From Thalia democratica (taxonomy: Eukaryota): DNA of 64,000 nucleotides. The DNA is taken from positions 1 through 64,000 of the forward strand of contig CBDBBG010000278.1 of NCBI GenBank assembly GCA_965202585.1, in the 5' to 3' direction. Positions 36,101 through 42,100 of the stretch are shown here, piece by piece. The notes beneath the pieces are model-generated. The model worked only from the letters and a program-made list of their open reading frames with translations. It searched no databases and was not told the DNA's origin. The position numbers and the translations under genes are program-made. The stretch's first letter is position 1. The number at the start of each line of letters is the position of its first letter.

Positions 36101-39100
36101 ATATTAAATTTTCAAAATACTAAAGCTACTCAATCAAGTCAACCTGTAGAATTACTACACAGTTACATAATCCCTCTGATAAGAAGTGTTAAATAATTTA
36201 GACAATTTTAATTACATTAAACTTAAAAAGTATAAATATGCTAAACTCTTTTTGATACTTACAATGATTACTTTCTATCAACTTTAGGACAAGTTCACGA
36301 AAGGTCAGGGTCACGGAGGATGGAAACCGGCAGACAATGACCAGGAAAGATGGCTGCAGGTTGACTTCGAAGTCCCTGTTAATGTGAAGGGAATACTCAC
36401 ACAAGTAAGTACTGTGTTTTGTGGGACACGTTCAAAATTCACCCGCGATCAAAACCTACCCTATCAAAATCCACCCAGTCAAACTCGAGAACCGCTTACT
36501 AATTGAGGATAAGGGTTAGGGGTAATAGTGATAGTTGAAAAAAAAAATATAAAGTAAATAAATAAAGAATGTATTTAAAAAAATGGGTGAATTTTGAACG
36601 CGGGTGGATTTTGATAGTATACCGTATTTTGTATATGTTTTGTTTTCTGTTAAATAAACTTGCAAATAAACTAGTTACAAAAATCAAAAATATTTTAGCT
36701 ACATTTAGTTGTTTTTTACAACAAATGGTGTACGTACTCAACTGTTATATACACTTTTTTAAGTTTAGTCTAACGCACTAGTGATTCCAATTTATTGTTT
36801 ATCTGATTAGTTAAGTTTGTTTTAGTATACAAAGCTATGTATTTGTTTTTACATTCGTAGCAGAGTCGACGTGAACGTAAAATAAGCACAATATGGTTTA
36901 TATCAGCCTAATAACAACATAATTTTAACACATTTTTATAATCTATACATTGTAACTCTTTTATTTTGTTAAAGTTTAACAACAAACTTTTTTTTTACTA
37001 ACTTTATTTTGAAAGCCTAAACAAGCAGCCAAACACTAAAATCAGTTTTTGTTATAAAATTATTTTTTACAAAATAAACATCTCACAGGGTAGGAACGGA
37101 ATCGGGCAAATAACTGATCGTGATTGGGTGACCAAGTTCAAAGTCGCCCACTCAGCTGACCCGAAGCACCTTGGCGCCAAAACCGAAGACTGGGAATTTA
37201 TATCTGATCAGTACGGACAACCCATTGTTAGTCTGTTTAATATAATACTTGTAAGTAAAATCTGTTATAAAAATAACTAGATAGTTTGGCAAGAGAAGAT
37301 TAAAGAGTAGATTAAATTATTCCTATTAATAAAAACCCAATTGTTATTTTTCGTTTTTATTTAATCAATTCGTTTCATAACGGACAACCCATTAACGATT
37401 CTATTGATTTTTATATTGGTGAACGATCTGATTTTTTTTAAACAACATGATAGTTGACTTTCAAAAAAAAAGGGAACCAAAATGTACTAATAGTAACAAT
37501 AGTTCAAATATTGAAGTCAGCAAGTTTATTTAATAACTTGTAAAGTTTTGATCAAAGCTATGTCTCGTCATAAAACACTTTTTACAACATTTTTAAGAAA
37601 CGATAAAATATTAAAATCGTTTAAAAAAAGTTTTCAATGATTTCAGATGAGTTTGCGTCTGTACGTATGTAAAACATTTTAACATAAATTAAATGATACT
37701 TAAGAAATAAAACAACTAATGAAATAAATCTAACTTAATACTCTATCCACATCTCAAAAAAAAAAACCAAGAGCTTACACGACCAGCAACTTATTCTGTA
37801 GATTTTAAGCGGCAATCCTATTTACATAAAATCTTAGGAAAACACTTGAGTTATATGCCTATAATAATAATATATTTAATACATTTCACAGATTTTCAAT
37901 GGAAATCACGATCAGGACACGGTTGTGACGAACATATTTCCCCGTCAAGTGGTAGCTCTTCACATGAGACTGTACGTACTTGAATGGAAGGACGAACCGA
38001 TAATAAGACTCGAATACATCGGCTGCTCTGCTTGTGAGTGATAAAATACATTGTTTATACTTTATGTTTAATAAATGACCTATTTTTATATTTAACAAAA
38101 ATTTTAACACTTTTTGAGAAGTTTGAAGTTGGTAGAACTTGAAATTTTGTACGCATTATCAATAAATTATAGTTAATTAGTGTGTAACTCAAGTTGTAGT
38201 GTCTTTGAAGCTCTTTTTACTCAAAAAACGTGTTTTTCTTTATTAATTTGGTGTTTAAGTTTGTTAAATTGTTTTTGAAAGTGTTTATTAAACTTCACCT
38301 GGATAACTGATAACTAGCAAGTCTAAATGATATGAACGTAAGTAAAGTTTCAGTACTAGAGTAGATACAATAATAGTTTGAAAACTTAATATTTTTAGTA
38401 ATTTTCAAGTAACAAAAACAATATTTTTTGTTCCAGCCTGCCTAAACGCCCTTGGTATGGGTAACGGGTTATTCTTGGATTCATCGATTCAAGCTTCTTC
38501 TTCTACAGCAGGCCATGAAGCTAAACAAGTGAGAGCCCCTACAGTCGACGGTAAGTAAAGCATACTGATGTATTTAAATAAAGTTTTTTTGAAAAAATAA
38601 ATCGAAATAAGCTTAAAATTATTTTAAAAATATGGCCTATTTTTACTTTAAACACAATTACTTTCAAATATTGCTCAAAAGATTAACTTTTGTGATAAAA
38701 AGTCTAAAAAAGAGAACGATTTTAAACATTTATACATAAACACGATTGGCATCAAACAAGCTTAGAAAACTTATTTTTATTGATAGTGATATAAAAAACA
38801 AGACATGTTTATAAAAAAGTTACTTTTTTCGCAGGAGAATGCCTGTCAAGCCAGTCTGACGTTGGTCAGGGGTACAGAGGTTACATCAGCAAAACTGCTT
38901 CCGGCATCGAGTGCCAACAATGGGTGTCGCAAACCCCCCATGCTCACAACTTGTATGTTTATATTATAAAATATTGATATCAATGAAACAATTTCAAACT
39001 GACAGTTTTTTATTAAACACAGTGTTTCATGCATAAAGCAATGATCACGAACTAAAAAAAATCTAATCTGTTTATATTATAATACACTTATTTATTACTG

Positions 39101-42100
39101 TTAGATCTTTATTTGAAACAAAGCTTATATGTGCTTCAGTTAATGAATTAATATTTGATTAAAAATCTATCATTTAGTTAAAGTTAAAATATGGGTTTTG
39201 AGCATTTAAGTTAGTACATCACAAACTGATACTACACATGACAACATCTTTAATTAAAAAAAACACAACTAAATTAAACAGAATAGAAAAAAACACCTAT
39301 AAACCATTAATTTTTTTCTTTTATATTTTATAAACACAAACTTTACTGCGAACAGCAAGCCAGAGAACTACCCTCAAGCGAGTCTGCATGGCAACCGGTG
39401 CAGGAACCCGGACGGGAGATCCACGGGGCCATGGTGCTACACCACCGACCCGGCTGTCGAGTGGGAGTCCTGCATCGTTCCCGTGTGCCCGAGTTGGTAA
39501 TTTTAATAAGTGTTCAGTGTATTAGGCTTTACAATGAGTTTAACTTTTTAATGTTTTGTATGTCTAGGTACAGCTATTTTATTACTTTAAAATTACTCTT
39601 CACTTAATAGTTAAACTATTTCAGTTTTTTTCATTATTCATTAAAAAAAAGAGTAGCTTGCATACCAGCAAAAATTAAAAATAAGTACATATTGAAATCG
39701 AAATATTAATGATTTTAACTGTAAACACTTCTATTAACTAACTTAAGTGTTTCAAAGCTATCGACAAAGTTATCAATCACAAAATTATAACTATATTTTA
39801 TTTAAGGTTACACACCAACTGGTTGGCAGCCTTCCAGTCCGACAAACTCCTGGGTAGAAGTCGGATTTGGTGATTATTATAAGGTAAATTAATAAATATA
39901 ATTTACTTAATTTTATACAATTTACTTTTTTTTTGAAGTAGTAGTTTAAGGTGTGAGTTTTAATACTTTTGAAGCCATTAAGTTAAAAGTACTTAATAAT
40001 AGGTATTGTTTTATCTATGAGTATTTAAATAAAGATGTTTTTTACTAAATTTAGACTTTAATTTTCAAATAAACTAACAAAACGTTCATTTTTATTTCTT
40101 TTACAGGTACAAGCTATAACATTGTTCGGGTTTGATTTGAGCAACTATGTATCAGCTTATTCAATAGCCTTCAGTGATGATAGCATTACTTATGTTAAGT
40201 ATACAAACCAAGCTGGTGTTGAACATGTAAGTTTATTAGAAATAAATTACTACCTTATCCTTTCTAGCACTTTGTGTCTAGTTCACACATAAAATTTTGT
40301 AAATAAATATTTGAAAACCTTAAAGTTTACAGTCAAAAGGTCATATACCTTCTTATTTAGACTTTATCATGGTATTTATACTTAATAATATTATTATTGT
40401 AAAACAAAACGTAAGTTTATAGGAGATAAACGTTTATGAACTATTTTTCAATCAGCTAAAAGTTAATCTAACCTAGTTAATGAAAGTTATCTTAGCTATA
40501 TAATTTTTTTCTTCTATACTTTTAATCAAATAGTCTTTATCACCTTCTACGTCTTTAAAATAAATTAAACTTTTCACTTTCCTTTCAGTACTTCAGAGGT
40601 GTGGACGGCAAAGTGCCCTACTACCAGGACGTACTGAGGGAGGCGATAGGCACCAAGTTCCTGAGGATTTACCCCAAACAGTGGGTGGGAAGCCCCGAAA
40701 TGCAGTTTGAGGTGAACGGTTGCTATAACAACAGAAGAATTTCCTGCCCCGGTTTATTTAACTTTTTTTTATTAATACTTTTGAACTTGCTTTAGTTGTT
40801 GTGTAGAAATTTTATTTACAACTTTACGGCAAAGTTTATTATGACAGTAATCTTATTTTTAACCACATTATGTTTTTATAGGCATCTACTACTATTAAGA
40901 TTGTTTACCTTGATAAAGACGTCATAAAACAAAGATACGGGAAAGATATTAAAACAACTATAATACTAAACTCTATAAGGATTTTGTGTTAAATAATAAG
41001 CAATTCATGTTTAAGTAATGATTTTTGAAAATATTTTTATACTAAAGCAAGTTTTGTTACAAGAAACCAGTATCTTTTTAACAAACTTATATTAACAGAT
41101 GAAACAGGAATATAAAAAGGTTTGAGCTAAGTAATATAACAGTCTAATAAAGCATTCTAACTTCGTAACTGTTTTGATATGATTTGTTAAATTACAAATA
41201 TTAGTTATAACCGATTAACAGACACAGCTCGGGCATTCGACACAGGTGTTGATGAAGACGTGACAATTGATTGCCCTGCCGGTTGCTTAGCAGACCCTAA
41301 CAACGACCCTGTTTACGGGGGTGACCCCAATTATTCCGAGGTTTGCTTGAAAAACGCTTGTAATATTGATTCAAGTTAACAAAAAAAAATTCTAAAGCAA
41401 AAAGGTCTACGGAAAAGTATAAATTTTAGTTAAGCATAAAACCCATTAGAAGACAATTTATAACTTTTGCTGACAGTACCGTTATCTTCATCTTTAAAGT
41501 TAACTGATCGTACCAAAAACAATAAATATAAAATAACTTTAGAAAACAGCTTAAGTAATTAGATTGCTGTAAAAAACCAATCAAAAAAATCAATTCATGT
41601 AAAACAGTAATTACGAAATAGTTTTCAAGATCATGTCTTTGATATGTCAATAAAACTTCGTTTAAAAAAGCTAATATAAAAATTGTGTTTGCAATTGTTT
41701 AAACCAATGTTTCTTTAAAACAAGGACTCAGCAGTATGCTTGGCGGCCATCCACTACGGTGCGCTTAACCCAACGCACGGTGGCAGCATTACTTTCAGGA
41801 AAGCAGTCGGCCAATCAGAATACAAAGGAAGCATTAGCAACAATGTGCAGTCGGAAGAGTGAGTTTTTATATATCGTTCAAGTTATAGTGAAATACAATT
41901 TAGGTGTATATAACTTACTTTTGTACGTGTTTCATTTCGTTACAAAGTAAAAATAGTTTGTATGTTATTATTTATCTGATTTATTTACAAAAGTAAAACC
42001 ATTGTTTTATATTCTTACTTTTATTTCAGCGCTCCCGGATCAACAACATCAATTACTTTCGAAGGAAAAGGTAAGTTAAGCAAAACAATGTTATAGACTT

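Follow-up and report, generated by a model that had tools for sequence, protein, structure and literature searches.

The nesting of one complete extracellular domain within another is well known and is exemplified by the alpha-I domain in the beta-propeller of integrins, the beta-I domain in the integrin hybrid domain and the L4 domain in an LE repeat of laminin. Kringle and discoidin (FA58C) domains are textbook modules, and in the textbook form of exon shuffling such mobile modules are placed between domains. The subject of this analysis is a kringle lying within a discoidin domain, a new case of domain insertion by exon shuffling, which is encoded by a stretch of 64,000 nucleotides from the tunicate Thalia democratica (GenBank assembly GCA_965202585.1, contig CBDBBG010000278.1, positions 1 to 64,000, forward strand), hereafter referred to as the window. 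The window is contig C287 of an 802-Mb genome and is AT-rich, with a G+C content of 23-32%. No description of a kringle within a discoidin domain, or of the receptor that carries it, was found in the full-text literature, where coverage is thin for subscription journals.

The plus strand of the window contains, between approximately 24.4 and 56.4 kb, a long series of short open stretches that are richer in G+C than their surroundings. These encode many C-type lectin domains (CTLDs), two discoidin domains, a kringle, LCCL, FN2 and trefoil domains, a transmembrane helix and a short tail. Six exons spanning 38437-40751 correspond to the second discoidin domain, which is split by a kringle of 86 residues. 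It is very likely that this represents a real nested domain, in which a two-exon kringle with phase-1 borders was probably inserted into a phase-1 intron in the spike-2 loop of the discoidin domain.

Structure of the interrupted discoidin domain

The six exons, designated E1, K1, K2, E3, E4 and E5 (Table 1), are bounded by AG acceptors and GT donors throughout. Searched exon by exon against Pfam, the window yielded a match of 51.7 bits for K2 alone, above the Kringle cut-off of 34.3, with the discoidin pieces falling below cut-off. The in-frame donor of K2 at 39493 is poor (a/GTTGGT), and a better-looking GTAATT donor is present four bases further on at 39497; use of the latter would shift the reading frame and lead to a stop codon in E3. 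Several other kringle loci in the genome are also broken near profile position 36-41. Two of the introns in this region carry dispersed sequences: the repeat at 38955-39066 is represented by more than 40 copies across the genome at 79-93% identity, and a repeat at 36463-36625 reached contig depths above 100,000 in DNA sequencing runs.

Table 1. Positions of the exons and introns discussed in the text (numbering of the window)
Feature	Position	Strand	Characteristics
E1, discoidin N-terminal piece	38437-38550	+	First Cys, LGM motif, spike 1, strand to RAP-TVD; phase-1 end, GTAAGT donor
Intron E1/K1	38551-38834	+	Phase 1; same phase in Clavelina and Styela
K1, kringle exon	38835-38952	+	Cys1 to PHAHN motif; phase-2 end; Pfam Kringle 4-34 of 79, E 4.9e-8, 33.6 bits
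Intron inside kringle	38953-39355	+	Phase 2; same split in Clavelina and Styela; dispersed repeat at approximately 38955-39066
K2, kringle exon	39356-39492	+	NYP and CRNPDG to last Cys, then Pro; phase-1 end, weak a/GTTGGT donor; Pfam Kringle 38-79 of 79, E 1.2e-13
Intron K2/E3	39493-39806	+	Phase 1; same phase in Clavelina, Styela and the C6 and C2 paralogues
E3, discoidin restart	39807-39883	+	Near-invariant YTPTGW motif, WVEV strand
E4, central discoidin strands	40107-40226	+	Weak F5_F8_type_C match, profile 55-87
E5, C-terminal discoidin strands	40589-40751	+	Closing Cys (NGCY); phase-1 donor; spliced to LCCL exon near 41221
First discoidin, uninterrupted, four exons	35868-35987, 36288-36404, 37089-37226, 37895-38035	+	Intron in same loop as kringle site
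FN2-in-CTLD exons	Approximately 44655-44858, 45291-45533, 45956 onward		

The protein encoded by the window is itself absent from protein libraries, and orthologues from the ascidians Styela clava and Clavelina lepadiformis were modelled in place of its own spliced product. The kringle possesses six cysteines, which were invariant in the six sequences compared. Pfam Kringle (PF00051) matched the Styela segment with 90.7 bits and the Clavelina segment with 95.9 bits. The kringle region of the Styela model had values of the predicted local distance difference test (pLDDT) between 77 and 95, and Foldseek matched it to the kringle of HGF NK1 (1gmn_B) with an E value of 5e-9 and 40% identity. In established structures kringles contain three disulfides, with the first cysteine bonded to the last. 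The lysine-binding site of kringles of the plasminogen K1/K4 type includes an acidic D-x-D pair following CRNP. This pair is absent here, the corresponding residues being D-G-R in the window, in its copy on C4 and in Styela P0014, D-G-E in Styela P0047, N-S-R in Clavelina and D-G-K in P0043. On the basis of this difference a C-terminal lysine is probably not the ligand of the nested kringle.

Pfam analysis of the Styela orthologue yielded a Kringle followed by F5_F8_type_C from profile position 24, with the N-terminal piece undetected; the C-terminal discoidin part scored 56.8 bits against a cut-off of 28.2. The match to the uninterrupted first discoidin of the same protein also begins late, at profile position 21. 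Because Pfam alone was indecisive on the discoidin halves, an independent hidden Markov model (HMM) was built from discoidin domains of unrelated proteins, 96 in all and none of them interrupted. When the kringle was removed, the window segment matched positions 1-155 of the 158 in this HMM as one domain (100.1 bits, E 6e-33). When it was retained, the match was divided into two pieces, residues 1-34 aligning to positions 1-35 and residues 128-239 to positions 42-155. What the kringle replaces is therefore no more than a few loop positions, those separating the RL strand from the conserved Trp. The N-terminal piece was placed on positions 1-35 with scores of 14-26 bits (E 1.6e-6 to 4.7e-10). 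The opening Cys of this piece and the closing Cys of the discoidin domain were invariant across the six sequences.

An AlphaFold model of Styela residues 912-1168 had a mean pLDDT of 83.2 and a predicted template modelling score (pTM) of 0.72. The model superposed on the C2 domain of factor VIII (1d7p) over model range 2-242, with a Z score of 19.6 and a root mean square deviation (rmsd) of 2.3 Å for 142 aligned residues, and gave Z scores of 20.0 with neuropilin-1 b1b2 (8c5g) and 18.2 with DDR2 (2wuh). The discoidin structures superposed across the whole span of the model with the kringle skipped, and the N-terminal piece lay on the start of factor VIII C2. The alignment used for this model (A2) included added rows of split discoidin domains and of kringles, and six residues of each added discoidin C-terminal piece fall on kringle columns. 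Two MAFFT alignments (A1 and A3) were set aside, as parts of the added discoidin rows were misplaced. A control model of the Clavelina protein, from an alignment of orthologues only (A4), had an overall pLDDT of 56.5, with the kringle below 50, and was usable for the discoidin part only. This control matched 1d7p with a Z score of 17.8 and an rmsd of 2.1 Å over range 5-242, with the discoidin built from both halves and the N-terminal piece included. In both models, then, the two halves are predicted to form one complete discoidin beta-barrel.

These results bear directly on an earlier reading of the window, made from the sequence alone, which had described a complete kringle nested in a single discoidin fold. 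The coordinates, peptide strings, two-exon kringle and phase-1 flanking introns of that original prediction are all present in the sequence, and the completeness of the kringle is borne out by its six invariant cysteines and the Pfam score of the Styela segment. The independent HMM and both structure predictions joined the flanking halves, and in none of these did the halves fail to form one fold. The expectation that standard domain scans would return broken fragments was likewise realised in the Pfam result, where the N-terminal piece was missed.

In the alignment the W of the YTPTGW motif falls on W47 of factor V C2 and on W2219 of factor VIII C2. In factor V C2 the three membrane-binding loops constitute spikes 1-3; spike 2 has R43 at its tip, W47 follows four residues later, and Q48, next to W47, lines the phosphatidylserine pocket (PMC11098723). 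As the W of YTPTGW corresponds to W47 and R43 marks the tip of spike 2, the kringle is located in the spike-2 loop, at the end of the barrel where ligands are bound. In 18 ordinary discoidin domains this loop, from the RL to the W landmark, comprises 3-10 residues; in the second discoidin of the window it is occupied by the 86-residue kringle. The first discoidin (35868-36404) has an unusually long spike-2 loop of approximately 20 residues that is split by an intron, of phase 0 in the window and of phase 1 in Styela and Clavelina. The original prediction was correct in placing the insertion in a ligand-contacting loop, since the site of insertion corresponds to spike 2 of factor V/VIII C2. Its description of the first discoidin loop as short was mistaken when set against the ordinary domains, that loop being short only beside the kringle.

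Splicing and conservation of the nested arrangement

Evidence from RNA was obtained from one marine metatranscriptome run, consisting of short contigs with a 0.05 share of words, the contigs of which were aligned to 35750-41700. These contigs cover the exon bins, and pure intron bins had a coverage of zero. The kringle is spliced in frame with the discoidin halves that flank it, and at the critical K2-E3 junction contigs ending at 39495 run on into the first letters of E3, as predicted for an in-frame GT-AG junction at 39492/39807. Further junctions were seen at 35987/36288, at 36404/37089, between E3 and E4, and between E5 and the LCCL exon (loose ends at 40751 and 41221). The K1 exon was covered, one contig departed from the genome exactly at the K1 acceptor (38834), and contig depth in the kringle exon bins was similar to that of neighbouring exons. 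An E1-E3 joint was absent among the joints listed, with 34 joints lying beyond those listed.

A nested kringle is also carried by P0043, a protein of 2,496 residues on a 7,690-base JGI contig. P0043 differs from the translation of the paralogue at C2:23.40 Mb by one residue in K1 and one in E5, and because of this close agreement it can be regarded as, in effect, a full-length transcript of that paralogue from the same or a sibling species.

Protein relatives of the window sequence were found in Styela clava (XP_039270230, 2,497 residues, named "uncharacterized" or "lymphocyte antigen 75-like"; and a second paralogue, P0047, of 1,846 residues) and in Clavelina lepadiformis (P0042, 1,874 residues, "macrophage mannose receptor 1-like"). 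All of these, together with P0043, exhibited the same order of discoidin N-terminal piece, kringle and rest of discoidin. The genomic DNA of Clavelina and Styela also encodes the kringle as two exons with phases 1/2/1, as in the window. No family member without a kringle was found in searches covering proteins of 1,373-4,370 residues having exact words in common with the query, which constitutes weak evidence.

At least three further loci of the same genome, on C4, C6 and C2, carry the nested kringle. The copy at C4:71.69 Mb remains colinear with the window for 46 kb or more, with an identity of 69-96%, and has identical exon lengths, phases and splice sites, including the odd GTTGGT donor. 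The copy at C6:55.13 Mb has a kringle 70-89% identical to that of the window. In this paralogue (C6:55128221-55131352, locus 1074-1303) the E1-K1 intron has been lost, such that the discoidin start and the first half of the kringle form one open exon; the former donor position still reads G/GTGAGT, within Gly-Glu-Cys codons.

Across the six sequences, identity to the window was 49-61% for the kringle and 46-51% for the discoidin domain, from which the kringle appears as conserved as its host, and the linker C-P-x-Y-T/I-P-T-G-W was invariant or nearly so. Between the window and its C4 copy the synonymous divergence (dS) was 0.23, with introns 84-91% identical. The ratio of non-synonymous to synonymous substitution rates (dN/dS) was 0.089 for the kringle (86 codons; 4 conservative replacements against 11 synonymous changes) and 0.023 for the discoidin domain (156 codons), values that indicate purifying selection on both. 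Taken together, these comparisons show that the nested arrangement is of long standing and conserved in a tunicate gene family, and is not peculiar to the window genome.

Window positions 15023-61228 align with C4:71665295-71714993 at 69-96% identity, and the whole contig is colinear with this part of C4, a contig of chromosome size; dS was 0.23 in the exons compared. The pair represents either two haplotypes that have diverged strongly or a segmental duplication of recent date. Among the contigs of the DNA runs, those that matched the window exactly had a depth of approximately 5, and a diverged version of 39446-39877, with a back-step of 144 bases, had a depth of approximately 50-70.

Origin of the nested kringle and alternative explanations

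The arrangement probably arose by the entry of a ready-made two-exon kringle with phase-1 borders into an intron in the loop of one member of a tandem pair of discoidin domains, an event that would predate the divergence of the sampled tunicate lineages. The exon shuffling put forward in the original prediction agrees with the phase-1 introns on both sides of the kringle in the window, Clavelina and Styela, as would be expected of a class 1-1 module in an intron. Because the disulfide expected between the first and last cysteines would bring the ends of the kringle together, the module could plug into a loop with hardly any strain on the host fold. The kringle would be positioned on the side of the barrel through which other discoidin domains contact membranes, collagen or peptides, with short fixed linkers holding it beside the strongly conserved spike 1 (GHEAKQ-RAP). 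Judged by where it lies and how well it is conserved, the kringle probably joins with spike 1 and the invariant linker in a composite ligand-binding tip.

A different interpretation of the same exons is that they constitute an optional cassette, with an E1-E3 splice giving a plain discoidin domain and so switching ligand specificity. Skipping of 38551-39806 would indeed keep the frame, both introns being of phase 1 and the E1-E3 join coding for Gly, and the kringle-less sequence scores as a complete discoidin; the weak GTTGGT donor of K2 and the persistence of G/GTGAGT at the former E1-K1 donor position of the C6 paralogue also accord with such switching. This interpretation is nevertheless unlikely, given that no E1-E3 joint occurred among the joints listed, that the kringle exon bins had a contig depth like that of their neighbours, that the C6 paralogue has E1 and K1 in a single exon, that the kringle is present in the transcript-like P0043 and that the kringle dN/dS is 0.09. 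A further alternative, in favour of which stand the non-consensus in-frame donor and the stronger out-of-frame donor four bases downstream, is an artefact of the gene model, the kringle exons belonging to another transcript or being a decaying relic in a long discoidin intron. Such an artefact is very improbable in view of the RNA contigs that join K2 to E3 in frame, the C4 copy with identical exon lengths and phases and the same donor, the same structure in two ascidian genomes and the purifying selection on the kringle. It is also hardly credible that the piece preceding the kringle is a linker merely resembling the start of a discoidin domain, so that a discoidin, a kringle and an N-terminally truncated discoidin would stand in series. 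Pfam does miss this piece and begins its second F5_F8_type_C match at position 24, but it begins at position 21 even on the uninterrupted first domain; the independent HMM places the piece on positions 1-35, the opening and closing discoidin Cys are invariant, and the piece lies on the initial residues of factor VIII C2 in each of the two models.

Several points weigh against insertion of the kringle into a discoidin loop as set out above. The structures are predictions for orthologues and not for the window protein, and the better model was derived from an alignment with added discoidin and kringle rows. The proposal of a pre-existing intron rests on the loop intron of the first discoidin, which in the window genome is of phase 0 and not phase 1. 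The RNA consists of short contigs of a metatranscriptome and not of a run made from the species itself, and the E1-K1 and K1-K2 junctions were not directly seen in it at the window locus. The composite tip is inferred from position and conservation.

The retention over a long period of a mobile module inside another module provides a rare, well-documented test of the reach of exon shuffling. The insertion is still recorded in the intron phases, and the loss of the 5' intron in the C6 paralogue represents the next step. There are also consequences for annotation: because the N-terminal discoidin piece goes unrecognised, profile scans and automatic names such as "LY75-like" and "mannose receptor 1-like" hide the architecture.

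The host receptor and comparison with known systems

The host receptor is a type I membrane protein that ends, after one transmembrane helix, in a short tail. Pfam analysis of the Styela orthologue yielded 12 CTLD stretches, one FN2, two discoidin domains, a kringle, an LCCL domain and a trefoil. As a whole, the protein looks like an endocytic or adhesive multi-lectin receptor. Orthologues are named in databases as "LY75/MRC1-like", "lymphocyte antigen 75-like", "macrophage mannose receptor 1-like" or "uncharacterized". The cytoplasmic tail (window 56023-56370; Styela P0014 C-terminus) contains two short motifs common to both species, K-S-L/V-P-S-F and S-G-F-S/D-N-P. In its Styela form, FDNPVV, the second resembles the internalisation signal FDNPVY of the LDL receptor, but without the Tyr.

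A further nested module was observed in the same gene, where an FN2 lies inside a CTLD, in the long loop and immediately following its GEP(D/N) motif (window 44655-46100). In the Styela P0014 counterpart (residues 1408-1586) Pfam fn2 was located at 1512-1554, and an HMM built from the other CTLDs of that protein matched positions 1-98 before the FN2 and 97-128 after it. It is possible, if still doubtful, that the family grafts whole binding modules onto ligand-binding loops, the kringle on spike 2 of a discoidin and the FN2 in the sugar-binding long loop of a CTLD, creating composite two-domain sites with loop introns as the points of entry. If so, module grafting would be a route to new specificities that is undescribed for extracellular mosaic proteins. 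With a kringle on the ligand face and a second module in a lectin loop, the family provides an instance from nature of domains grafted for new binding sites.

The mannose receptor family (MRC1, LY75/DEC-205, PLA2R1 and MRC2) was defined here by an N-terminal ricin-type domain, a free-standing FN2, 8-10 CTLDs, a transmembrane helix and an endocytic tail. The tunicate receptor resembles this family as a type I membrane protein with a long row of CTLDs, a single FN2 and, after one transmembrane helix, a short tail. Its database names notwithstanding, it lies outside the definition, because the Styela orthologue gave no N-terminal ricin-type match in Pfam, because the FN2 is nested in a CTLD where that of the family is free-standing and N-terminal, and because two discoidin domains, a kringle, an LCCL domain and a trefoil have been added.

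At the level of the individual modules, the nested kringle shares with those of plasminogen, HGF, tPA and the ROR/Kremen type the six-cysteine pattern, the CRNPD and PWCYT motifs and phase-1 borders with an internal intron, and differs from them in lying inside another domain and not between domains. The host domain has the same predicted beta-barrel as factor V/VIII C2, neuropilin b1 and DDR2 (Z 18-20, rmsd approximately 2 Å, approximately 140 aligned residues), with the terminal Cys pair and the RL and W landmarks, but holds a whole kringle in its spike-2 loop; unlike factor V, its spike 1 has no hydrophobic pair such as W26/W27. Among the structural matches was the 'discobody' (PDB 4pt6), an engineered factor VIII C2 in which the spike end of the discoidin barrel similarly serves as a platform for new specificity. 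The discobody is man-made and has short redesigned loops, whereas the tunicate receptor is a natural graft of a whole domain. Parallels in architecture are offered by integrin alpha-I and beta-I and laminin L4, in each of which a complete autonomous domain occupies a surface loop of its host with both folds intact. The tunicate case differs in the identity of the host and guest folds, and in keeping a readable exon-intron record of a phase-1 module in a loop intron.

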